Shown here piece by piece: positions 9,060 to 30,507 of a stretch of DNA of 64,000 nucleotides (position 1 is the first letter of the stretch; each line of letters opens with the position of its first letter). Position numbers and translations under genes: made by a program. Source of the stretch: Histomonas meleagridis 2922-C6/04-290x (lineage: Eukaryota > Protista > Parabasalia); contig JAANOX010000259.1 in the NCBI GenBank assembly GCA_020184695.1, forward strand, positions 85,612 through 149,611, written 5' to 3'. Under the pieces are notes generated by a model, which did not search any database, had not been told where the DNA came from, and saw nothing but the letters and a program-made list of their open reading frames with translations.

Positions 9060-9410
9060 GATTTCAGCAATTCGTATATAGTGATCATCCTATAATCTTG
9101 ATATCATGGATATATAATATCTATACATAGTTACAGATATAATTAATATAAATCTAAGAATTATATCATGACTAGCACGAGATAAATTTATTCTTTCATT
9201 CCAAAAAGCTATAAAAATCGACTTTTGCATGGTTTATATCAAACGATAGCAACAACGATAAGTGACGATAGGAGCGAATTTGAATGATGGTAAATATTAT
9301 CAAAATTTTACCCTTTCCTCGATTTTCTTAATTTTTGTATTTTAGCAAAAAGTTCATTTTTATTGAATGAATATCTATACAAATTTAATTTGCAAATGAT
9401 CTTTAAAATA
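9060..9410 (-). repeat. Dispersed repeat, copy 1 (decayed coding family)
   Basis: Clearly similar to 17830-18105 and 18450-18525. Minus strand reads FWNERINLSRASHDIILRFILII. Confidence 0.75.
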
Positions 9411-15744: not shown

Positions 15745-17070
15745 TTAATTTTTTTTCTTAAGCAATGGACATTTTTTAATATAATGATCATAATTGCCAC
15801 AATAGCTACATCTATATTTTTCACCCTTTAATTGTTTCTTACCAAATGGAACGTTTTTCGATATATTCGTGTTTGCACGTCCTTTTTGAGCTATTGTTAA
15901 AAGCAATTCTTCATTAGGCATGATTTTAATTTGTTCTGCTTCTTGAAAGAATTTTTCAAAAAGCATATTTGATATCATTATATTTATGTGCAATTGCAGC
16001 GTATGGTGCAATTTTTGCCATTATTGTACCATAATTATTTTTAGCCTTAACATTGTTATTAATAATTTTTAAGTTTCCTTTTATTTTTTCTGATTCTTCT
16101 CTAATATATCTTGATGGTACTTCTTTAAATTTTATTCTATTATTATTTGAAATATGCCTACATGGTATTGCATATTAAGGATTATGTATTCTGCGAATAC
16201 ACCAACAACAAATGTCATTATAATTTTGAGGATATATACTGTTTTTTAAATATTCATCTGTTATTACTATTTTATATAAAAGTCCGACTTTATCATTTTC
16301 CTTATTAGGTCTAATTATGAATTTATTATCAATAACATTGTTTATTAAAAAAAAATGGATTAAATTATTAATAAATTGGATAGATTATTTAATATTTTAA
16401 TCGATTTTGTTAATGTTATTCAATATATAATTCGATTCAAATTTCGAAAAAATACATTCAATTTTTCCAGTATTCAAATAAGTTATAGGAATGCTTTTTA
16501 AAGCCATATCCAATGGCAACCGATGTTGTCTATAATTAATTAATTCACTTAGAAGTTCTTTTTCAGGTGAATTTTCCATGTTATTCATTTTATTTGTCAA
16601 ATATTCTATAAAGCTTTTACAAGATTGTATATTATTTTAATATGAAAAAATATATCCATTATTAATTTGTTGTCGTGGAGCAATTCAAGATTTCTTTGGA
16701 TGTGTACTAAGCAAAATCCAATAATTGTCTCAGGAAAGATATTATGAGCTGCATTGAATTGGGCCATATATCTATCCATAACAATTAAACAAATTTTTTT
16801 TTTGTGTAAATTGTTTAATATCATTCAATAATAATTTAAACAAATTTTCTGTTTCATCTGAAAAAAAGTCATATGAAACGATTTGAGAATGGTCATCAGG
16901 ATCAATAAATGAAATGTACATTCGAATACATATCTTCTGTTACAGCAACTTGTTTGAGCTGCAGAATAAAGTAATTTAGATTCTCTTGAAACATTTGAAA
17001 CAAATTCTGTTATACTAATATACCCGTTGAATGGGAAAGTTGTTTTTTTTAATTTTATTACACTCATTAA
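15745..17070 (-). mobile_element. Decayed MULE (Mutator-like) transposase with SWIM and CCHC zinc-knuckle remnants
   Basis: Fragments in order: N-terminal RRYVFECTFH; MULE core IVMDRYMAQFNAAHNIFPETIIGFCLVHIQRNL; SWIM remnant IPCRHI near 16170; C-terminal CSYCGNYDHYIKKC. Many stops and frameshifts. Confidence 0.8.
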
Positions 17071-17829
17071 TAAGAGATGTAACTTTGTATTTGATTTTTT
17101 CCATCAAAATAGCAAACTACATTCATAACCGTTTGAACATAACTTTTTCATATAATAAATTTTTTTCTAATCAAATTTCACTTTTTGAATGTGCTGATCA
17201 TGGCGAAAACAATTAGCCTTTTAGATCTTCATTAAAATTTGAGGAATTGTTTTTCGCTACAGACAAACCTGAAATTTCAGTAGCAACAAAATTGTGTAAA
17301 AAAGGCGGGGAATTCCTTGGTAATTTCAGAAATGTGATATAAAATTGTTCTGATTATATTCATATACAAATATTGAATCAATAATTGTTGGTTTACCCGG
17401 GGTGTCATATATTCTCGTTTTTAATCTCAACTTTCAGTGCAGCTCATTAAATCATTTGGTCTTTCTCATTTGTGATTTAGTACACCTAATTTATTAATAT
17501 ATATATTTTATCATTTTATCCATCACATTTAGACTTTCAATATACACACATAATTTCATATCTCATTTAATAATTACTATCTCATTTTATCTCTCTCTTT
17601 CAAACATCTGTGATTCACGTAATCATTTTTTGCATTTTTGTCTATTTTGTTTAATTTTTTAGTATGCATATAATAGGTTTTGTATTTTTAAATCTTTAAT
17701 TATATGTATTTGTGATTTAACTTTCTTGGTTTATTGCTTCAGTTCTTGAATATAAATCAGATGATTTTTCATTCATTCGATTCTATCGTTGGAAATGAAT
17801 CCAGTTAATAATACTATATATATTAAACT

Positions 17830-18525
17830 CGACTTGCGATTTCCACCCATCGTATATAGCAATCATCCCACTATATTAATATCATGAATATATAATATAT
17901 ATACATAGTTACATCTATGATTAATATAAATCTAAGAATAATATCATAATTAGCACGAGATAAATCTATTCTTTCATTCCAAAAAGTGACAAAATCGACT
18001 TTTGCATGATTTATATCAAACGATAGCAGCAACGATAAAATATGATAGGAGCGAATTCGAATGATGATAAATATTATTAAAATTTTACTATTTCCTCGAA
18101 AAGATACGTTATTTGTTTCTATCATTGTGATGTGTAAACAGCCAAATTAAATGATTCTTGCTTCGTTAAAAATTTTGATATTATATCATAGAAACGTGAT
18201 TTGATATTTATTACGAATAATTATATGAGATCTTGATTTCCTTGAATTTATGAATTTATTGAAAAAATGAATGATGTGATAATTTTCGTAATAACTTAAT
18301 GATGTATCTATTTGACCTAATTAATGATTCATAATCAATGATATAGTTTCTGTGTAAGTCACATCCTTGAAATATCTTGGGACTATCGATACGTTTTTTT
18401 CTGATTGAAACGATTCTCGATCATTGAATTTATTTGATGTATCTTTATTTTATTTTTGTATTTTAGCAAAAAGTTCAATCCTATTGAATAAATATCTATA
18501 CGAATTTAATTTGCAAATTATTTTT
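17830..18525 (-). repeat. Dispersed repeat, copy 3 (inside the island; two blocks, 17830-18105 and 18450-18525)
   Basis: Direct-orientation similarity to 9060-9410. Reads FWNERIDLSRANYDIILRFILIIDVTMY and ICKLNSYRYLFNRIELFAKIQK. Confidence 0.75.
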
Positions 18526-18880
18526 CCAACATTCTATGTAATGATGTTGATTTCCCTGCCCCTCGGAATATTTGTCAATATTAAAGTTTTTAGAAATTAT
18601 TTGATGAATAATGAAATATCATTTATTTTACATGATTATATTAAAAATTGATATCATATTCTTTTCAAATCTATCGAAAATATTGATGAACTCAAAACAT
18701 TTCGGATATATTGATGGCATATTCATGTAATTGTCGTATATAAAGTGTTACCAAAAATTATTTTCATACGATAGAAATAATTCAAAAATAATTGACTTAA
18801 TTACGATTGTTTTAAATTATAAATATCTGACATTTGGGAATAAAATTTGGTCAAAGAAGTTTGACTCTTATTCAGAAAAT

Positions 18881-19165
18881 TCAGAAGTTTGTTGGTCCAC
18901 CGAAATTCATCATAACTTCCTTCATACGCTTTTCCATGGAGTCAATAAGGTGATTTATAACTTCTTCAGAAATTGAACTCCATACAGCAAAGATATATTC
19001 AATTAGTTCCTACTTTGTTTGCGGAATCAATTCATATTCTTTCGCCTTAATGATACTCCATAGATTCTCGATAGGGTTGAGGTCAGGCGACATCGCGGGC
19101 CAATTTTCTAGGATATTTACATAATTTTTCAAATAATCAATAGTTATTGTTGATATTATTATTCA
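18881..19165 (-). mobile_element. 3' fragment of a Tc1/IS630 transposase (not in ORF track)
   Basis: Reads YLKNYVNILENWPAMSPDLNPIENLWSIIK...QTK*ELIEYIFAVWSSISEEVINHLIDSMEKRMKEVMMNFGGPTNF*. WPxxSPDLNPIE is diagnostic. The 5' part is replaced by hAT sequence. Confidence 0.9.
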
Positions 19166-19169
19166 TAAC

Positions 19170-20035
19170 AAATCTACTATTTCAAGATTTACAATAACAC
19201 CTGATGAATTTAAAAATTTACATAGGGTTCTACAAATTTTAAAAAAACTTACACTTATATTTGAGGATCCTAAAACAAAACTGATGCATACCCGAAGATT
19301 GAAAGTGCCATGTTCGAATTAGAAAGGCTCTCAATCGATAACAACAAATATGCAAGTGCAATAAAAAATTGTATTGGGGAATATACAATTAACTCTCCAA
19401 TTAAAAATTTATTTTTAACTGCATATATATTAACACCTCGTGGACACAATGACTATTATAAACGTTTATTAAATAAAATTGATGATAAACCTCAACACCG
19501 ATTTATTGAAAGTTGGATAGTTGGATCAAAGATTAACTAATATTTAGTTTTAAACAATAAAGCTATTGATGAAATATTGCAAGAAGGAGTTGATAAAATA
19601 TTAGAACAAGAACTTTTAGAAAAAGAATTTGAAACAGACGAAGAAATTGATAAACACAAAAAAGGTGTTGATGAAGCATTAAAATATTATTTTTTCATAT
19701 TATCATTTCAATTCATAAAAAATCTATCAAAAAATTATACGACTGATTTGAATGTAATTACGAAAATAGATCAAGTTCTTCATGAATTTGTTTCACAACC
19801 ACTTGATGATTTAACAATTTTGAAAAGTGACTATTAAGATTGGTTATCTTGGAGAACTAATCCATATTTAGAAATTCTTGCTGATATAGCCCTAAGACTT
19901 GAAGCATCAGGTTGTAGTGAAGCAGCCTGTGAACGCACACTCTCAACGCAACGACTTATATATAATAATAAAAGAAATCGATCAAATGATGATTTACTAT
20001 TTGCAAAAATGACTATGATGAGGGCTGATTATTAA
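19170..20035 (+). mobile_element. 3' part of a hAT transposase including the dimerization domain
   Basis: Ends LADIALRLEASGCSEAACERTLSTQRLIYNNKRNRS (hAT S...ER.FS...RNR motif). One frameshift near 19290 and in-frame TAAs at 19538 and 19835. Confidence 0.8.
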
Positions 20036-20356
20036 ATAGAAGAAGAGCGATATTATTTTCATTTTTAGAACCCTATTGTAGTAGTAAGTGAGTTTCTATC
20101 AAAAAAATAATATATTATAATTAATAAATAATAAAACAAAATCTAATAAAAGTGATGTAATTTATTGATGTTTTGAATTTCAAGATATGTTAAAATTGAT
20201 TCATAATAAGATTAGTGAAGCTTTTATATAGTATAAAATTTACTTTGGCTCATTTTCGTTCATATCACATGTCTGTCCTTTCTACAGGCAAAATTTTACC
20301 CAAGGTAAAATTTTTTTTAACCAATTTTCTTTATTATTTTATGACTTTTGTTTTAT

Positions 20357-20887
20357 ATAAAAATAGAACGACAAATAATTGAAAAAAATCAAAATGAAAT
20401 TGATATTAGTCTTGAGAATCAAAGTAGATATTGCAAGATCGCATATTACGGAAAGCAATCTGCCAGAATTGGCTCGCTTGCTTCTGATTCTGACTATAAT
20501 GACATCGTTTTTTAGATGTCAAGACTTCTATCCATAAAATCATTATCAGTAAATGCATCGAATGAACCTGAAATGGCGGTTCCACGGAAGAAAGGAAGAA
20601 AAAAGAAAAGTCAAAACGAACCAGAAGTTATAAGTGAGGATTTCCCATCATGCAGAATATGTAAAAGTGAAGAACACAAAGCAGAAAACTGTTCGATTTA
20701 TAATTATTACATTCGGCAATATAACAATTATTCCGGTACAAAAAATAAAAATAAATGTAAAGTTTGTGGCTCACGGGGTCATAATTCACAAACATGTGAC
20801 ATAAGAAAAGGAGGAGTATTAGGGATAAATGATGGAGTAATTTATTTTTTTTATGGAGATATTTTTTCAGATAATATTGAAACCTAA
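20357..20887 (+). mobile_element. Double CCHC zinc-knuckle fragment (MULE C-terminus-like or Gag-like)
   Basis: PRKKGRKKK basic patch, then CRICKSEEHKAENC and CKVCGSRGHNSQTC. The frame extends upstream to about 20357 through one TAG (20513-20515). Confidence 0.55.
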
Positions 20888-21300
20888 TACTAGAAAAAAG
20901 TAATGAATAAAAAATTTATCTAAATTTGTTCTGAATATATTCGATTATCAAAAATTGTCATCTTGAATTATAATGTTGGTATATTTATTATCTCCACGTA
21001 ATGAATGTGTAACAATTGTTTGCTGACTGAAATGATCAGCTATCATTGTCAACAATCCAAAAAAAATGATTTTAGCGCCAATTAAAAAATTTTCACAAAA
21101 ACTTCATTGAATATCGACGTTATCAAAATGACATATTGTGGAAATTTGGCTTTTATCATGATAATATTCGATATAAACCAATCAAAAGATTCTATCAATT
21201 TACTGTGCTGCAGAACACTGTTCTATAACATAACATTCATTATTATTTTATTAATTTGAAGTATTGTCACTTTTCTTGTTTATTGAAAATATTCTCTGAT

Positions 21301-21341
21301 GGTAGAAAAAGGGCACACTTTTTGACACTCCACTTTTTGAT
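21301..21341 (+). repeat. Left outer TIR of the Tc1 element
   Basis: ggtagaaaaagggcacactttttgacactccactttttgat is the inverted match of 24281-24320. Confidence 0.85.
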
Positions 21342-21393
21342 CGGTTTATGCAACAACAAAAGTGACAGTAGGGTTTGTATTTGGAGGTAATTA

Positions 21394-21448
21394 GTTTTGA
21401 TCGGCGTGCATCGAAAAACTTCGTTTTTCGATGCACGCCGATCAAAAC
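21394..21448. repeat. Perfect 26-bp inverted repeat with a 3-nt loop
   Basis: gttttgatcggcgtgcatcgaaaaac-ttc-gtttttcgatgcacgccgatcaaaac, with no mismatches. Confidence 0.98.
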
Positions 21449-21543
21449 CGTCGGGCCTGTGTGGTGAAAGTTTGAGTGTTTATTACGGTTGTGGTCGAGC
21501 ATAACAAAAGAAGTTTGCTTTTTAAAAAAATCTCAGTCTATGT

Positions 21544-22418
21544 TTATTGACTGTAGATGAACTCTGCATCAGATCGACCAGAGTACATTGGCATCAATGC
21601 AAATGCTTCTGATGGAGTTTTTCCAGTTCCAGTGAGCTGCTTCAGTGATGATTGCTCCAACATGGTATTATACTGGTTGACTATCCAGTACCACGAAGAG
21701 GCCTGGTCTTTCTTCTTTCGATGGTTTCCCACCATCTCTCAATCTTCCCATTTTTTTCGGGAGTGTACGGGTGAGTCTTGTGGATTTCCACATTACTCCT
21801 TTGCAGTAGCTCCTCGAAAGGTTCACGAAATTCGGTCCCATTATCCATTATAATGGTTTTGAGAACTCCTTTTTTTTGCAGGACAGCAGAGAGGGCGTTC
21901 ATTGCCAAAATACTTGTCTTTTGCTCAAGTATCTGATAATGAATAATCAGCCTGCTTCTGTCATCAATAAACGCAATTAAATATAATTGCTTATAGTTTT
22001 CTTATGGGAGAAGCTCCAGGTAATTTAGGTCAGTATGCCAAGCTTGATTGACATACTTTGCTACAAATCTATTGAGGTGCTCTTTCTTTTTTTCTGGGCG
22101 ATTAAATTGGAACAAGCTAAATTGTTCATATATGGATTTGCATTTCCATGTTGTAAGAGACTTTGGTGCAAATGGATCTCTCTTGGCTACATTTGCCATT
22201 GCTTGGTAACCAACATTAGCTTCCTGCTTATATGCCATTATATAGGCGAGTTCTTCTTGAGTTACAGGAGGAGATGGACGACCACAATTTCGGATTTGGA
22301 TTTCGAACATTTCACAGATCTCATGTACCCTATCCCTTCCGATGTGGTATTTCATCATCACCGCCTTTACGCCTTTGGTACAGATATCGTACTTGAACCC
22401 TTCAATGCTGAAGCTCAT
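21544..22418 (-). pseudogene. rve/IS481-type DDE transposase (about 290 aa reconstructed)
   Basis: QAWHTDL; YLIAFIDDRSRLI; IMDNGTEF; HPYTPEKNGKIERWW; VNQYN...SSL...KTPSE. One in-frame TAA (22002-22004) and one frameshift near 21710. Confidence 0.88.
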
Positions 22419-22664
22419 TAAAAGTAAACCTGACAAATATTGGATTTAAATTTATCAAATATTCAATTGTTTCGATTTCTATTAATTCATTCGATTTTTA
22501 ATAAAAATTTTTGAACGTATAAACTATTTCCAATAAAAGGAAAGCACGATATACCACAATTATTTAATTTTTCGATTGAGTATAGAGGTACTTCACAATT
22601 TTTTTCTTCATGAACTAGTCATTTGCTTTCCTTTTTTACGAGAAAATCTGTTTTTACTGTTTAT

Positions 22665-24118
22665 TCAGTTATTCAATAGTGTAAGCAATTTGCCATTGTT
22701 CTTTAAAATTATGTAGCGATATTTACATTGTCCAGATGTTCGGGTATTTCCAAAAATCTGTGGTACTTTAGACCATTTTTTTCCATTCTCTAGAACAAAT
22801 TGGCATAGCAATTTGTCCTCTTCATCTGTCCATTTACGGATTGCTGCTCTTTGCTTGTTTCTCAGATCTAGAACTGCTCTAGCATTAGGGTCGAATCTTT
22901 CAGGATCATTGATGCTTGGATCAAATTTCAAAAAAAGTCGTGCATCATCAATAATTTGAAGCTCATTATCACATTGTAGTATGGGCCCATTAAAAGGGAA
23001 AGTATTTCTCCTGAATATTCATTTATGCACATTCCTCCATTTAAAATACAATACTTAAGTCTTGAATTAAATTGTCTAGTTAAAGCATTTACCTGTTCCA
23101 TTGTAAGTATATTATTCCACCAATGACGGCATAAATATATCATTTCATCGATCTTTTGTGGTTCTGATTGTTTAATTAACCATTCTTTAAGCATTGCCCA
23201 TACTACTTCTATTGGATTCAAGTCTGGACTGTTTGCAGGCCAGATACCAAGTAAGTTGATTCGTTTTTTGTAACCATAACATTGTTTCTTTTGCCACATG
23301 ATAAGGAGCATTGTCTTGCATAAAATAATAATAATAATATTCATCTTTTCTGTTCAAGATTCCAAGTAGTTGAACATTATGACTATACTGCTCAGCATCA
23401 ATTTTCACTGGAGAGACAACAAACTCTGACTTATAATTTATACCAATTGCACCGAAAATCATGATTTTGTTGGCTGTTTTGTTTCATTCACATAAATATT
23501 TTCATTTGTACTGCCATGTTTTTTCCATAAATATGAATTATCTGGACAAAATTGGATTTTACACTCATCACTAAACACAATTTTTTCATGTTTTTCATCG
23601 TTTTGTAACATAGAATAAGCAAAAGTAAAACTTCTATCCAAGCATGCTTGAGTCATTTGAGGTCTCCTTTTAAGTGGTTCGAAAAAAAAATGTAATTCAT
23701 GTCTGATTTTTGCAATAGTTGATTTTTTGATTGATTATTCTGGACTGCTTATTTGTTGTGAAACTCGCTTGCAAGTTGACCTTGGTGATGAGATGGTTAT
23801 TTCATCAATTTTTGCTTTATCATTATTATCAATTTTTAGAAGTCTTTATATCTTTTTACATAAAACTTCTCCGCTTAGCTGATATTCTTTAAGTACTAAT
23901 GTAATATGTATTTGTGATGTATTTAGACAATGTTCAATATCGCGATATGTAAATCCGAAACTTCTGATTCTTATTATCGCTTAATTTTTATTTTCATCAG
24001 GCATTACTCCAGGGTATGTTTTTTGAGCAATATTGGCTTTTATTCGATCTTCTAGATAGAGTCCTAACAACGACCAGCTTTCCATCTGATTTCTATCGTT
24101 CGCTATCGTGCTTTCCAT
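22665..24118 (-). pseudogene. Tc1 DD34E transposase with apparent C-terminal Myb/SANT domain
   Basis: IVFSDEC / FMQDNAPYH / WPANSPDLNPIE (34 residues between D and E). N-terminal HTH region has TAAs at 23981, 23846 and 23735. Single-base indels near 23465 and 23268. Downstream frame encodes KWTDEEDKLL...GKKWSKV...RTSGQCKYRY. Confidence 0.85.
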
Positions 24119-24280
24119 TTTTTGAAACTAGTTTATGTATAAAAAATCTTAATATGCTTCAAAAATATGATATTAGCACTTTTCGTAAACGATTCAAAAC
24201 TGGATATCTAAAAGTGCTGTACAGAAAACGTTAAGACCTTTTAACGGTCATCTCGAGTAATTCACTTTTAATGTAAACAT

Positions 24281-24659: not shown

Positions 24660-24731
24660 GGGGCGATTCGGGAATCGAACCCGAGACCTCTCGCACCCAA
24701 AGCGAGAATCATTCCACTAGACCAATCACCC
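24660..24731 (-). tRNA. trnP-UGG: tRNA-Pro(UGG), copy 2, identical to copy 1
   Basis: Same 72 nt as 14474-14545, with its own T8 terminator at 24649-24656. Confidence 0.97.
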
Positions 24732-24811: not shown

Positions 24812-26206
24812 ATGAAAAAAATTGATATTAGAGACTTATTTGAAGTCGAATTTTTGGATGATAAGCCACCAATAAAATCTATTGCTGCAGATACAATTAA
24901 AGAAGATGAAATTAATCAATTATTTGAAATTATTAATTTAACTTCTAATGAACCTACACTCGAGAACTTAAGAAATTTTTCAGATTTTATCTCACGGAAA
25001 GAAAGAATGAATTCTGAAATCTTTAGCCAATTTCCAATTCATTATCAACTCCTCGATATATTAGTTTCAGACGCACCCAAAGAAGTTATAAAAGAAGCTC
25101 TTACATGTTTATCATATTTCCCTCGTGCATTTCCTGATTTAACAGAAGAAATTCTCAACTCCAATTATTTTGATTGTATCTTTCGTTTAATGGAAACCAA
25201 AGACAGTGCATTTACTGTTCCCATATTTGACAATTTTTCTATGCTTATACTTTGTTATGAACCCATACGGTCTGTTTTTTTCCAAAATTTTTCTGTTACT
25301 CAAATATTTTTTTATGAAATTTCTATTCTTGACACAGTAAACAGTGAATCCATAGCCCAATTTTCGGACTACATAACATATTTTACACCACTAACTGAAG
25401 AAATCGCCGATATTTTATTCCGAATTTTCCAAGTGATAATCGTTCAACGATTTCCAGAACGAATTCATAAAAGCCACGCACAAATATTTTCACTCCATGG
25501 AATTTTAACATGTCTACAATCAGAACAATTCAATGACCGATTTAAAGTACATCTTGTTGAATCGAATAATATCACAAAATTATTAAACATATTTTTTTGT
25601 GGAAGAGAACTTAAAAGAGAACGAATTTTAGCGATATCAGTTATTGCGGAATTATACAAACTTCATATACCAGATGTCCCAAATTTTATACCACAAATTC
25701 TTGAATCACCTTATTTATGTCAATACGCAGGTTCATTTAATCAAATTGCGTCAAGTCTAAATCAAATAATTTCATTTGCTTCCGAAGAAATTTTTGATGA
25801 ACTTTTAGAAAATGATGTCTATAATAAATTGGTACAATTGCAAAAAGATGCTTCTTTTGCTACTAAATCAATGGCACTTGATTGTTTAATGGCGTTATTT
25901 TATCGAATGACGCCACCGCAATCTTTGGTATTTTGCCAAGAGTCACTTTTCGATATACTATTCAATATGCTTAATTTGGATAATAAGGAATTAATTGTTC
26001 AAATCATTGAGTTTTTAAATGTAATTTGTGAAAGAGCTGCAAGGGAAAATGATTTAGAAACAGTGAAAATTATTTTAGCGAAAATTAACGGAGCTGAAGA
26101 ATTAAATAGTGTGGCGGCTGAGAACACTGAATTACCCGAAAACACATACGAAATAATTGGACAGTTATTAACACTATGTGAATCAGAAAATGTCTATGAA
26201 GGATAA
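24812..26206 (+). CDS. ARM/HEAT-repeat helical protein (importin-alpha-like, divergent)
   Basis: 464-aa helical-repeat pattern, e.g. ASFATKSMALDCLMAL; resembles 12999-14417. Confidence 0.65.
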   Translation: MKKIDIRDLFEVEFLDDKPPIKSIAADTIKEDEINQLFEIINLTSNEPTLENLRNFSDFISRKERMNSEIFSQFPIHYQLLDILVSDAPKEVIKEALTCLSYFPRAFPDLTEEILNSNYFDCIFRLMETKDSAFTVPIFDNFSMLILCYEPIRSVFFQNFSVTQIFFYEISILDTVNSESIAQFSDYITYFTPLTEEIADILFRIFQVIIVQRFPERIHKSHAQIFSLHGILTCLQSEQFNDRFKVHLVESNNITKLLNIFFCGRELKRERILAISVIAELYKLHIPDVPNFIPQILESPYLCQYAGSFNQIASSLNQIISFASEEIFDELLENDVYNKLVQLQKDASFATKSMALDCLMALFYRMTPPQSLVFCQESLFDILFNMLNLDNKELIVQIIEFLNVICERAARENDLETVKIILAKINGAEELNSVAAENTELPENTYEIIGQLLTLCESENVYEG

Positions 26207-26466: not shown

Positions 26467-29400
26467 TTATTTATAATTTTGGTTCCATTTCAAAACGTCA
26501 GCAAAAGCATTTTCCACATTTTCATTTTCGAAAATTTCGATCAATTTTTCCTCTTTCAAATTATTTCTTATCATAAACTTCGTTATTTCATAATTATGTT
26601 TTGCGTTTTCGTCAATTTTTAATTCTTTTAATAGCATTTTCACCAAAACGAAAGATGTTACAATGTTATTATTATTCTCGAACATTTGTTTCGATAATAA
26701 AATTGGAATCAAATCATTTTTATCCAATTTTTCCAACAAAATTTTACCAATTTTAATCACATCGAATAAGTAATGATCACTTTCGTTAATGATATACACA
26801 ATTTTCTGCAAAATTTCCATCGATGCCACATCGAAATCCAAAGAATTTAATATGTTATACTTAAGTTTATTACCGAAATTCAAAAAATCCAAAATTATAT
26901 TATAACTTGAAAACTTACAATTAAACACAACGTTAATCATTTGCATGAAAATTTGAATATTTTCGTTATTATAAAAACGAAAAATATTTTCTTCGAAAAT
27001 CGGAAATCTTTTATCATAAAGATTCGGATTTAATTTATCGAAATGAGGTTGAAGTAGCTCATTAAACACAGGCGAAACATTTATTAAAATTTTATTTTTA
27101 TCATTAATATGATTCGAATATTTTGTTGATAATATAATATTTAACTCACGTGAATAAGAAGGAGGATAACATTTTATATTATCGAAAACTTTTTTATTTT
27201 TTTGATAAATTTTCGGATAATTTTTCTTTTCATCATTATTAAACTTTGTTATATTAATATATGGATATAATGGATGAAAATCGGGAATTTGGTTTAAAAT
27301 TTTCATATAATTTTCACGTGTTATATCATATTGATTTAATATATAAAATATGAAATAACTTTCAATGAAATTCTTTTGTAAGAAATTAATTAAATTTTCA
27401 TTAACGTTTAATTCAAAATTATTTATGGTCGGATATGAAATATTTATTGGATATAATGAATTAAATATATTAATATTTAATGGATATTTAAAATTAATGT
27501 TTTCATTAATAGTTAACATATTAAAACATTTCGTTGTTATACTTTTAATATATTCAGGAAACAAAATTTCATTCATTTTATTCCCAAATGCATTTAATGT
27601 TTCTTCAATATTATCATAATAAGGAACAAATTCATTAAATCGTTTTATATCGATTTTTATTATCATTTCAATTAACAATTTACGAATTCCTTTTTCAGTT
27701 GTTAATGCTTTAATTAAACTAATTTCATTCGGCTCAATACTTAATTCCACAAAACATTTATCAATTAAATTTATTATATTCTTATCTAATGTATTATAAT
27801 CTTGTCGAATATATGAGAAATAAATCGACGTCGTTATTAACGAATAGAAATCATTTCGTTTAATGATTATTCGTTTCGACCATTTTTTGAGATTAATATT
27901 TAAACTCATTCGATTTCCATATGAAAAAAATGATGAAACTAATCGAGTGTTTTGATATTTCGCTAATACATATTCTTCGATTTCTTTCCATTTATCATTA
28001 CATAACAAACGATTAGAAAACCATAAAAAAGTAAAAAGTTCAAATTCAGTTGTTTCATTATTATAAGGATTAAAAGGAATTTTAATTTTTGAGTTTTCCG
28101 TTTTATTTTTAATTTCTTTTTCTTCTTTAAATGTTATTTCATTTTGTGGATTTAATTTTATTTCATTAGATATTATATATTTAAAATTATTTTTCGTTTC
28201 TAAATCATTTCGAATATTATTAAATGATTTTGGATATAAATTAATAACTTTTCGATGTATTTCATCAAGTTCATTTTGAGTAATATTAATATCTTTTAAT
28301 GTAGAAATAAAATCGAAATCATTTTCATTTATTATCCATTCATTAAAATTAAATTTGTTAATACATAAATCAAAATAATTTTTATCATCTTTAAGTTCAA
28401 GAAATGTTTTATAAGGAGTTTCTAATTTATTTTCATTCATTTCATATAAAACTTTTAATATTTCTCGATCAAAATTCGCAGCAACTTCGAAATAATTTTT
28501 TATGATAAATAAATTGTTTTTCGGTATTATTGAAATTGCTGTTTTACATATTATTAATGAATATTTATATTGGAATGCTAATTTAAAGAAGTTCAAAATG
28601 TTTTCGATAATTAAATTATTATTTTTAATTTTTATTAATTCGATTAATAATTTACAACAAGAATTAGTAAAAACAGAACCGAAATAATTAATAATTTGTA
28701 TGATTCCAATTATATTATCTTCATTTAAATTAATTTTTATGATAATTTTTGTTAATAACTTTAAATATGAATTAATAATTTTTCCGAAAATCGATTTCTT
28801 AAATTCATTATCTACAATTAATAATAATTTCTCTAATTTTAATTTATAATTTTTCCAATCTTTTAATCGTTTAAATGATTTCAAACTTATCATTGAATTC
28901 GTAATATCGAAACCTAAAATTTTTATTGATTTAAAAATTATTGGTAAAATTTTATTAAAAATTTCTTCGGAATATAATAAAACATCATTTGATTTAGTTA
29001 ATAATTTTAATGCAATAGGGAAAGAAGAATAAGAAATTAAATTATAATCCAAAAGTTCAATAATAAATTTTGTACTTAAATTCTTAAATATTTTTATGTA
29101 AAAATTCGAGTTCTTAAACCAATCAAGTTTCGAAATTGATATATTAATATTAAACTCATTAATTAACAAAGAAATTTCTTCAAGAATTGATTCATGAGGA
29201 TTATCCTTTATAAAAGATAAAATTATTTTCTCAATTTTTATCGGTAAGTTCTTAATATTATATAATTTATAGTTAATACTTTTTAATAATTTTATTATTT
29301 GTATTTGTTCGACAAAATAATTCGGTAATGGATTTAATATCAATGATAAAATTTGTTGCGTTTTAATTTCATTCATTAAGTATAAGTTATTAAAACAATT

Positions 29401-30507
29401 AATTAAACATTTGATTAATGATAAATATTTCGTCGGTTCTTTTTCTATTGCAATTTGCGTTATATATTCGAAAAAATTGTTCGGAATTTTATTGTTGTTA
29501 ATAAAAACCGAACATAACTTGATAATTGAGACTTGAATTATCGATGGAAATGTTACGTCAAATATTAAAAATCGTTCTAATTCATTTAATTCTATGATAT
29601 TATAATGATTTAATGTAACTATTAAGTCAATAATTTCGGATTTATGTGAAATAGTTATCGAATTTGTTGTCCAAAGTTTAGTAATTATGTCAAATAATTC
29701 TTTGAATTTGTTTTCTTGGATATTAAATAAATTTGTTTCATTTCGTTTGACATTTAAATTGATGATTTCAATCGAAAGTGAAATTTGATTGGAATCAGAT
29801 GAATTTAATGCCTCAATTAAACGAATATATACAATATCAAAATTAAAAAATTCAGTTTTTGGATATATTGAAAGAAATTGTTTGAGGAATTTAAGATTAG
29901 ATTTCTTGACAACAACCGGAAATAAGACTTTGGAGTCTTTACAACACATTAAAACAACTGCATGTGATAACGGTGAGTCAACTAAAAATTCTATGATTGA
30001 AATTATGGAATTAATTGATAATTCATCTCGAAATAAAATCCATATATCATCACTAAGACTTTCGTGTAACTCTGGGTGTGAACTAATAAGCATACAATAG
30101 AAGTTTTCAATGTATTCGGACCGTTCATTTGGTGGAATAGTTAATAAACAATTAACAAAAAAATTAAAAAGTATAGAAAGAGAGCTGGTTTCAAAGTAAG
30201 AATCATTGGTTAACTTTTGGTATGTTTCAAATAATGATTTTGGAGAAAAAGCAATTAATAAAGATGATAAATGATTCAGAAATAATTCCGTTAAGTGTTT
30301 TAACTTAAGGTTTTGGTGGCACACTGGTAAAACATGTTTTATTATTGCTTGTAATAAAGAAGGAATGAAATTACTATTATTTAAATCAAAATTTTTCACT
30401 TTTAATAACTTTGTAAGTTGAGCAAAAATGGCTTCAATTTCCGATGTGTTTCCAGTGCTTACTGCGTCTTGAATTGCCTTTTCAAAACCATCGCTTTTTA
30501 TTCCCAT
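26467..30507 (-). CDS. Large HEAT-like, Ile/Asn/Lys/Leu-rich hypothetical protein
   Basis: Uninterrupted 1346-aa ORF in very AT-rich DNA; family not recognised. Confidence 0.75.
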   Translation of the reverse strand: MGIKSDGFEKAIQDAVSTGNTSEIEAIFAQLTKLLKVKNFDLNNSNFIPSLLQAIIKHVLPVCHQNLKLKHLTELFLNHLSSLLIAFSPKSLFETYQKLTNDSYFETSSLSILFNFFVNCLLTIPPNERSEYIENFYCMLISSHPELHESLSDDIWILFRDELSINSIISIIEFLVDSPLSHAVVLMCCKDSKVLFPVVVKKSNLKFLKQFLSIYPKTEFFNFDIVYIRLIEALNSSDSNQISLSIEIINLNVKRNETNLFNIQENKFKELFDIITKLWTTNSITISHKSEIIDLIVTLNHYNIIELNELERFLIFDVTFPSIIQVSIIKLCSVFINNNKIPNNFFEYITQIAIEKEPTKYLSLIKCLINCFNNLYLMNEIKTQQILSLILNPLPNYFVEQIQIIKLLKSINYKLYNIKNLPIKIEKIILSFIKDNPHESILEEISLLINEFNINISISKLDWFKNSNFYIKIFKNLSTKFIIELLDYNLISYSSFPIALKLLTKSNDVLLYSEEIFNKILPIIFKSIKILGFDITNSMISLKSFKRLKDWKNYKLKLEKLLLIVDNEFKKSIFGKIINSYLKLLTKIIIKINLNEDNIIGIIQIINYFGSVFTNSCCKLLIELIKIKNNNLIIENILNFFKLAFQYKYSLIICKTAISIIPKNNLFIIKNYFEVAANFDREILKVLYEMNENKLETPYKTFLELKDDKNYFDLCINKFNFNEWIINENDFDFISTLKDINITQNELDEIHRKVINLYPKSFNNIRNDLETKNNFKYIISNEIKLNPQNEITFKEEKEIKNKTENSKIKIPFNPYNNETTEFELFTFLWFSNRLLCNDKWKEIEEYVLAKYQNTRLVSSFFSYGNRMSLNINLKKWSKRIIIKRNDFYSLITTSIYFSYIRQDYNTLDKNIINLIDKCFVELSIEPNEISLIKALTTEKGIRKLLIEMIIKIDIKRFNEFVPYYDNIEETLNAFGNKMNEILFPEYIKSITTKCFNMLTINENINFKYPLNINIFNSLYPINISYPTINNFELNVNENLINFLQKNFIESYFIFYILNQYDITRENYMKILNQIPDFHPLYPYINITKFNNDEKKNYPKIYQKNKKVFDNIKCYPPSYSRELNIILSTKYSNHINDKNKILINVSPVFNELLQPHFDKLNPNLYDKRFPIFEENIFRFYNNENIQIFMQMINVVFNCKFSSYNIILDFLNFGNKLKYNILNSLDFDVASMEILQKIVYIINESDHYLFDVIKIGKILLEKLDKNDLIPILLSKQMFENNNNIVTSFVLVKMLLKELKIDENAKHNYEITKFMIRNNLKEEKLIEIFENENVENAFADVLKWNQNYK

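Follow-up and report, generated by a model that had tools for sequence, protein, structure and literature searches.

A dead Tc1 (DD34E) element in Histomonas meleagridis whose transposase very probably carried a native C-terminal Myb repeat

Tc1/mariner elements encode the textbook minimal transposase, consisting of one DNA-binding and one catalytic domain, and insert nearly at random into TA. In the 64,000-nucleotide stretch of Histomonas meleagridis 2922-C6/04-290x DNA analysed here (hereafter the window; contig JAANOX010000259.1, positions 85,612 to 149,611), a broken Tc1 transposase frame on the minus strand is followed by a Myb repeat in a different frame. This arrangement raises the question of whether the two halves belong to one polypeptide, to two separate genes, or to a pair of frames joined by slippage during translation, and where the Myb repeat came from. 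Our analysis leads us to conclude with high confidence that window positions 22520-24135 hold a dead copy of a low-copy Tc1 (DD34E) element, the transposase of which natively ended in a Myb tail and was made as one polypeptide of approximately 470-481 aa.

The whole Tc1–Myb element was delimited on the minus strand by its inverted ends and by comparison with two paralogous copies on contigs C68 and C113. It spans 22520-24135, i.e., 1616 bp counting a TA on each side, and the same comparison places the element proper, without the flanking TA, at ~22522-24133. In sense orientation, the 5′ terminal inverted repeat occupies 24104-24136 and shows the tip TA/AACTAG (the slash follows the flanking TA), while the 3′ terminal inverted repeat, 33 nt long and 88% complementary to the 5′ arm, occupies 22519-22551. 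These inverted ends enclose both the transposase and the Myb halves, in agreement with a first, sequence-only reading of this DNA. The degraded transposase–Myb frame extends over 22665-24118 (minus strand) and is interrupted by three frameshifts and three premature stops. The first ATG of the family frame, at 24116-24118, lies within the 5′ inverted repeat and opens a frame of ~481 codons in C113, close to the fused product of about 480 aa that had been predicted; a second ATG, located 11 codons further at 24083-24085, gives 470 aa, which is the length of an intact relative, P0001. A TA is present at both ends in all 11 related elements; no empty site was found, so that a target duplication and element sequence are inseparable.

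Three-frame translation shows that the transposase of the window copy is spread over three frames, which are then followed by the Myb repeat. On the minus strand, an N-terminal Tc3-type helix-turn-helix region (approximately 23610-23810, transferred by alignment from C113) precedes a DDE catalytic core at 23207-23569, with the first and second catalytic Asp at 23567-23569 and 23313-23315, respectively, and the catalytic Glu at 23207-23209; the DDE_3 piece passes the Pfam cut-off (30.3 versus 28.6 bits). The catalytic domain is connected to the Myb repeat by a linker of ~60 aa (22836-23012), which comprises a short helix and a hydrophobic-x-x-x-D-P-x-I/V-N/E-D motif that is conserved between families in the alignment. 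The single Myb repeat at 22713-22835, corresponding to residues 44-84 of the 22665-22964 frame, matches Pfam PF00249 with 48.1 bits (cut-off 24.4; E 1.3e-12), and its translation displays a W-x18-W-x-Y spacing, in which Tyr replaces the third Trp, together with an R2/R3-like recognition helix. The Myb frame runs from ~23012 to the fusion-frame stop codon at 22665-22667, and no ATG lies ahead of the domain; the transposase frame, in turn, overruns the true junction by 28 codons and ends at a stop at 22928-22930. The overlap of the two frames and the missing start codon, both of which had been pointed out beforehand, are therefore reproduced.

The window copy is dead, as it carries three frameshifts, three premature stops and a 9-bp insertion. 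The three stops (23981-23983, 23846-23848 and 23735-23737) lie in the vicinity of the helix-turn-helix and arose by substitution. Alignment with the paralogs locates the first frameshift, a 1-bp deletion in an A run, at ~23472 (relative to three of the four paralogs), the second, a private 1-bp insertion, at 23270, and the third, a private 1-bp deletion, at ~23015; the 9-bp insertion at 23331-23339 is likewise private, stays in frame and adds extra Tyr codons. The ~23015 deletion falls right after the usual Tc1 C-terminal motif (...GGMCINEY) and is the break that parts the transposase frame from the Myb frame. A single-base indel indeed separates the frames, as had been supposed, but its site is neither near 22990 nor in the T7 run at 22929-22935, which in the unbroken frame codes for Leu-Phe-Leu.

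To what extent this break is a property of the family is answered by its other copies. A whole-genome DNA search retrieved four further long copies (contigs C68, C113, C87 and C273), a copy on C2 with an internal deletion (L006/L007), and end fragments; no intact copy of the window family was found in the genome. The five long copies are 90-98% identical over 985 common columns, and the Myb segment is present in all five. Each of the four paralogs keeps the base that is missing at ~23015 and passes from transposase to Myb in one frame, and neither a stop nor a frame change occurs at the junction in the other family copies. In C68, a 327-aa open frame contains both DDE_3 (1.1e-16; 61.5 bits, cut-off 28.6) and Myb (8e-10). 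C113 maintains a single phase throughout its ~481 codons (470 from the second ATG) with three point stops, and its N-terminal piece matches HTH_Tnp_Tc3_2 (E 1.5e-08; 35.2 bits, cut-off 31.5), whereas C87 is represented by open stretches of 280 aa and 93 aa that share one phase. The spacing between the second Asp and the Glu is 34 residues in C68, as it is in the relatives P0001, P0004 and P0007. The suspected in-frame Tc1 DD34E–Myb fusion is thus real in C68 and C113, and family copies devoid of Myb, or a conserved stop between the two domains, were looked for without any being found. Collectively, the paralog comparison indicates that the two-frame appearance of the window copy results from a private 1-bp deletion and that the window family descends from a fused ancestor. 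Contig C248 additionally contains an inverted pair of elements of ~1.35 kb, ~19 kb apart (L011:1501-2854 and L012), the 5′ end and 3′ subterminal region of which are 75-80% like the window family while the interior is non-coding and unrelated; they are probably non-autonomous relatives of the family.

The frame break could in principle be an error of the long-read assembly, with the window copy being intact, since Nanopore reads were used (PMC8529796) and the ~23472 indel sits in an A run. However, Illumina reads were used to polish the assembly, the junction deletion lies outside a homopolymer, and three stops by substitution as well as a 9-bp insertion are also present, which makes this explanation highly improbable.

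Intact versions of the same architecture exist outside Histomonas. A word-index protein search identified P0001, a protein of 470 aa and 54% identity that comprises a helix-turn-helix, DDE_3 and Myb. It is encoded on a contig of 1767 nt with inverted ends homologous to those of the window element, and its tail, from a different organism, is 51% identical to that of the window family. P0001, P0002, P0004 and P0007 all have continuous open frames through both domains, and the elements of P0004, P0007, P0125, P0148 and P0159 possess complete inverted ends with TAAAC tips. Among the best 120 matches of a profile search, at least 50 metagenome proteins of ~380-560 aa carry both DDE_3 and Myb; their sources are ENA, Logan, JGI and a single NCBI record. 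The Myb repeat is C-terminal in 56 of 56 proteins and starts at a median of 83 aa past the catalytic Glu. When the C-terminal 119 aa of P0001 were used alone in the word search, only P0001 itself matched; this search is uninformative because a 45-aa Myb falls below significance against 5.8 billion proteins.

Several of these records give hints of their sources. P0146, and P0125 on GCA_949284775.1 (L088), are Tc1–Myb proteins filed under a bacterial label or in a metagenome-assembled genome at NCBI, and probably represent eukaryotic DNA binned with bacteria. One contig with an intact Tc1–Myb element also carries a MULE transposase and a chromo-domain gene (L080:1626-3705), and another carries a second, Myb-less DDE_3 gene (L085:1906-2916); the sources of both look like transposon-rich eukaryotes.

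These paralogs and relatives bear directly on how the two frames are joined. Programmed -1 frameshifting at GAC TTT TTT TGA, which would join the frames and give two products per element, had been offered as an alternative on account of the overlapping frames and the T7 run. The offset, however, is private to the window copy, with all four paralogs one base longer at ~23015, the T run is an ordinary Leu-Phe-Leu stretch in the paralogs, and in at least 50 relatives the whole fusion is one open frame. With both the paralogs and the intact relatives reading straight on in frame, we reject frameshifting as vanishingly improbable. A second possibility is that Myb is encoded by a gene of its own within the element, in the style of PIF/Harbinger, where there is precedent for such an arrangement. 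The annotation of Tritrichomonas foetus appears to agree with it: TRFO_38609, a 379-aa transposase, is itself Myb-less, and a 72-aa Myb gene starts 2 nt downstream in the +1 frame. Yet inspection of this locus (L091:3001-4360; MLAK01001257.1) reveals a 1-nt frame change exactly at the transposase/Myb junction, so that TRFO_38609 and the adjoining Myb gene are one frameshifted Tc1–Myb element annotated as two genes. In addition, the window copy lacks an ATG before the domain, frames are continuous in C68, in the copy on contig C279 and in the four relatives named above (P0001, P0002, P0004 and P0007), and the transposase is of the DDE_3 rather than the Harbinger type; we consider a separate gene very unlikely. 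One native polypeptide accordingly remains the preferred reading.

Given that the window copy is broken, folds were compared on the relative P0001. Its AlphaFold (AF2) model has a mean pLDDT of 75, and structural matches to Mos1 and Sleeping Beauty cover both its paired-like N-terminus and its catalytic core, with Foldseek E-values of 3.5e-11 for Mos1 and 1.3e-10 for the Sleeping Beauty catalytic domain. The linker is modelled with a pLDDT of 83-86 at residues 371-395 and continues into a helix at residues 397-405, and the Myb repeat is modelled as three helices (416-429, 433-439 and 446-458). Among solved structures, the tail is closest to T. vaginalis Myb2 (3osf, E 4e-09), c-Myb, and T. vaginalis Myb1 and Myb3 (2k9n; 3zqc), all of which are Mybs of the DNA-binding kind and not SANT domains of the chromatin type.

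The fusion is also found in other Tc1 families of the same genome. Protein searches detect more than 100 Tc1 catalytic-domain matches in Histomonas, and a small tail profile places a Myb repeat directly 3′ of the catalytic domain at at least 11 further loci, which represent several families only 30-45% identical to the window family. Open frames spanning both domains reach 351 aa in the C279 copy and 391 aa in the copy on C99. Myb-bearing elements measure 1.43-1.69 kb. The Myb-less Tc1 families of the genome are shorter, at ~1.2 kb, and have TA/CAGTG or TA/AAG tips and an ordinary Tc1 tail of 61 aa beyond the catalytic Glu. The presence of the fusion in divergent Histomonas families, in T. foetus and in metagenomes means that it predates the window family.

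A catalytic-domain tree (175 rows, rooted on fish Tc1) assembles all 50 Myb rows in one clade of 67, the support of which is weak (39). The AU test strongly rejects a tree in which the Myb-positive rows alone form a clade (p-AU 2.7e-38), implying that the clade of 67 also encloses rows that lost the tail, carry a diverged tail that escaped detection, or stem from truncated gene calls. The nested Myb-negative rows include T. foetus P0006, a gene call split by a frameshift, and the C4 copy, which has a divergent Myb-like tail; many others possess long unexplained tails, and Pfam analysis of the long-tailed Myb-negative members yielded a sub-threshold Myb in P0168 only. The nested Myb-negative rows are partly gene-calling artefacts and partly divergent tails. 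When the Myb repeats themselves are placed in a tree, those of the transposons cluster nearly as a single group, separate from host R1, R2 and R3. The nearest relatives of the window family are identical in the Myb and catalytic trees, an agreement that speaks for both domains having been inherited together after one old fusion. Host R3 is the best-scoring match for 54 of the 60 tails, with R2 and R3 about equal for the window family. Each host Myb gene has two or three repeats (R2R3 or R1R2R3) and lacks a transposase; the tail is a single repeat.

The sequence-only reading had envisaged a Tc1 lineage that captured a host Myb repeat and a possible vehicle for the spread of Myb genes. A recent capture of a Histomonas Myb repeat by this one family would be favoured by the abundance of Myb genes in the genome and by the best host matches to the tail, which reach 44-50% identity over ~45 aa. 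However, the tail of the window family is 51% identical to that of P0001 and clusters with transposon tails instead of host repeats in the phylogeny that had been called for, and the fusion recurs in T. foetus and in families whose catalytic domains are just 30-45% identical; hence such a capture is most unlikely. The role as a vehicle finds no evidence either, the two- and three-repeat host Mybs forming groups of their own. As far as the trees and alignments indicate, the fusion is common to a large, old Tc1 clade of tritrichomonad parabasalids and uncultured organisms, and a Myb capture, if any, would have been ancient and single and would not have drawn on present-day Histomonas Mybs.

What, then, might the tail do? 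The native transposase would consist, in order, of a bipartite helix-turn-helix, the DDE domain, the ~60-aa linker and one C-terminal Myb repeat. We infer an ordinary Tc1 cut-and-paste reaction into TA, in which the N-terminal domain would recognise the inner stretch of each inverted end and the Myb tail would serve as a conserved accessory DNA-binding module. Slightly favoured, at somewhat less than even chances, is a role of the tail in anchoring the transposition complex on its target DNA or on chromatin, because the N-terminal end-binding domain is kept and C-terminal add-ons of related recombinases act as tethers. The analogy behind this mechanism is provided by two systems. The chromodomain integrases of Ty3/gypsy chromoviruses likewise bear an extra targeting or tethering module on a DDE recombinase, although they are retrotransposon integrases, and engineered fusions of DNA-binding domains to Sleeping Beauty (PMC3413126) embody the same add-on idea, but as laboratory constructs, and targeting by the Myb tail is putative. 

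In a close rival to tethering, possible if somewhat less probable, the Myb tail would bind the element's own ends, at the AAAC tips or at subterminal sites, and aid complex assembly in a Harbinger-like manner. All 11 Myb-bearing elements start with TA/AAC, unlike the TA/CAGTG or TA/AAG of the Myb-less families, and most tails have K-N-R in the third helix, resembling the AAC-reading R3 helix of c-Myb. Against this, AAC is too short for statistics, the difference in tips cannot be separated from phylogeny, and the retained helix-turn-helix is normally enough to bind the ends. Apart from the AAAC tip, no motif limited to the ends of Myb-bearing elements was found. The recognition core of T. vaginalis Myb, ACGATA (PMC3203581), does occur in the ends of the window family: ACGATAG is present on the minus strand at 24093-24099, just internal to the 5′ inverted repeat, and at 24103-24109, in the 5′ inverted-repeat end, and it is found in the ends of the P0001 and P0148 elements as well. 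As a Myb site it was discarded, since the ends of Myb-less Tc1 elements (copies on C265, C206, C153 and C97) hold the same motif; it is more plausible that the N-terminal domain binds at ACGATAG in the ends. 

Across the window, ACGATAG occurs 13 times against 3.3 expected, a count that none of 100 shuffles reached (examples at 9243, 9265, 17783, 18020, 18768, 35646, 36039 and 36876), and some of these sites may belong to the ends of other transposons or to promoters under Myb control.

The tail could be a natural targeting module that steers integration or complex assembly to DNA motifs, for instance through an R3-like helix reading AAC, a sequence that recurs in the conserved tip of these elements; this proposal is tentative and rather doubtful. 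The flanks of 11 elements are AT-rich and share only the TA, with no obvious common motif in a sample too small for statistics. A regulatory or import role of the tail appears unlikely. 

The surroundings of the window element were also inspected. A tRNA-Pro (TGG) gene lies at 24660-24731 (minus strand), ~520 bp from the 5′ end of the element. Targeting to tRNA genes was excluded: no tRNA gene lies close to any of 28 other Tc1 loci, and the tRNA-Pro neighbour is therefore taken as a coincidence. The region 17000-22500 is nearly devoid of long open frames and contains, ~3.4 kb from the element, a degraded Tc1 catalytic-domain fragment of 36% identity with one stop (~18899-19150; C259:104510-104761, minus strand). 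A 144-aa open frame at 22002-22436 (minus strand), 84 bp from the 3′ end of the element, looks integrase-like by eye (W-H-T-D); Pfam searches with this and three other neighbouring frames (20516-20887, 24812-26206 and 26467-30507) gave zero matches.

Compared with known systems, the element resembles Tc1, Tc3 and Sleeping Beauty in its Tc3-type helix-turn-helix, its DDE_3 domain with DD34E, its short inverted ends and its TA flanks, and it keeps the Tc1 C-terminal motif R-L-x-x-x-I-x-x-G-G-x-x-x-Y. It differs from all three in that the frame continues ~115 aa past the usual C-terminus through linker and Myb, and in that its tips are AAAC instead of CAGT. In PIF/Harbinger elements, a Myb-like protein is encoded separately and helps to assemble the transposition complex. 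The Tc1–Myb element is similar to these in being a DDE transposon with a Myb-type DNA-binding module, but the module is fused C-terminally to a transposase of another superfamily, Tc1, that retains its own DNA-binding domain. In fusions of the SETMAR type, too, a host-type domain and a Tc1/mariner transposase form one polypeptide; those, however, are immobile host genes without functional ends, whereas Tc1–Myb is a multicopy mobile element of which intact copies with ends exist. The tail shares the R2/R3-type repeat with T. vaginalis Myb1, Myb2 and Myb3, yet it is a single repeat fused to a transposase. The open-access literature searched yielded no account of a Myb tail on a Tc1/mariner transposase.

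That a large, old clade retains an extra C-terminal domain implies that the domain pays its way. The finding bears on target choice by DNA transposons in compact protist genomes and on the design of targeted transposon vectors; if the targeting role were true, the clade would be nature's equivalent of the Sleeping Beauty transposases engineered to carry DNA-binding domains. For parabasalid biology more broadly, Myb gene counts in genome annotations can include transposase tails, as exemplified by the 72-aa Myb gene of T. foetus.
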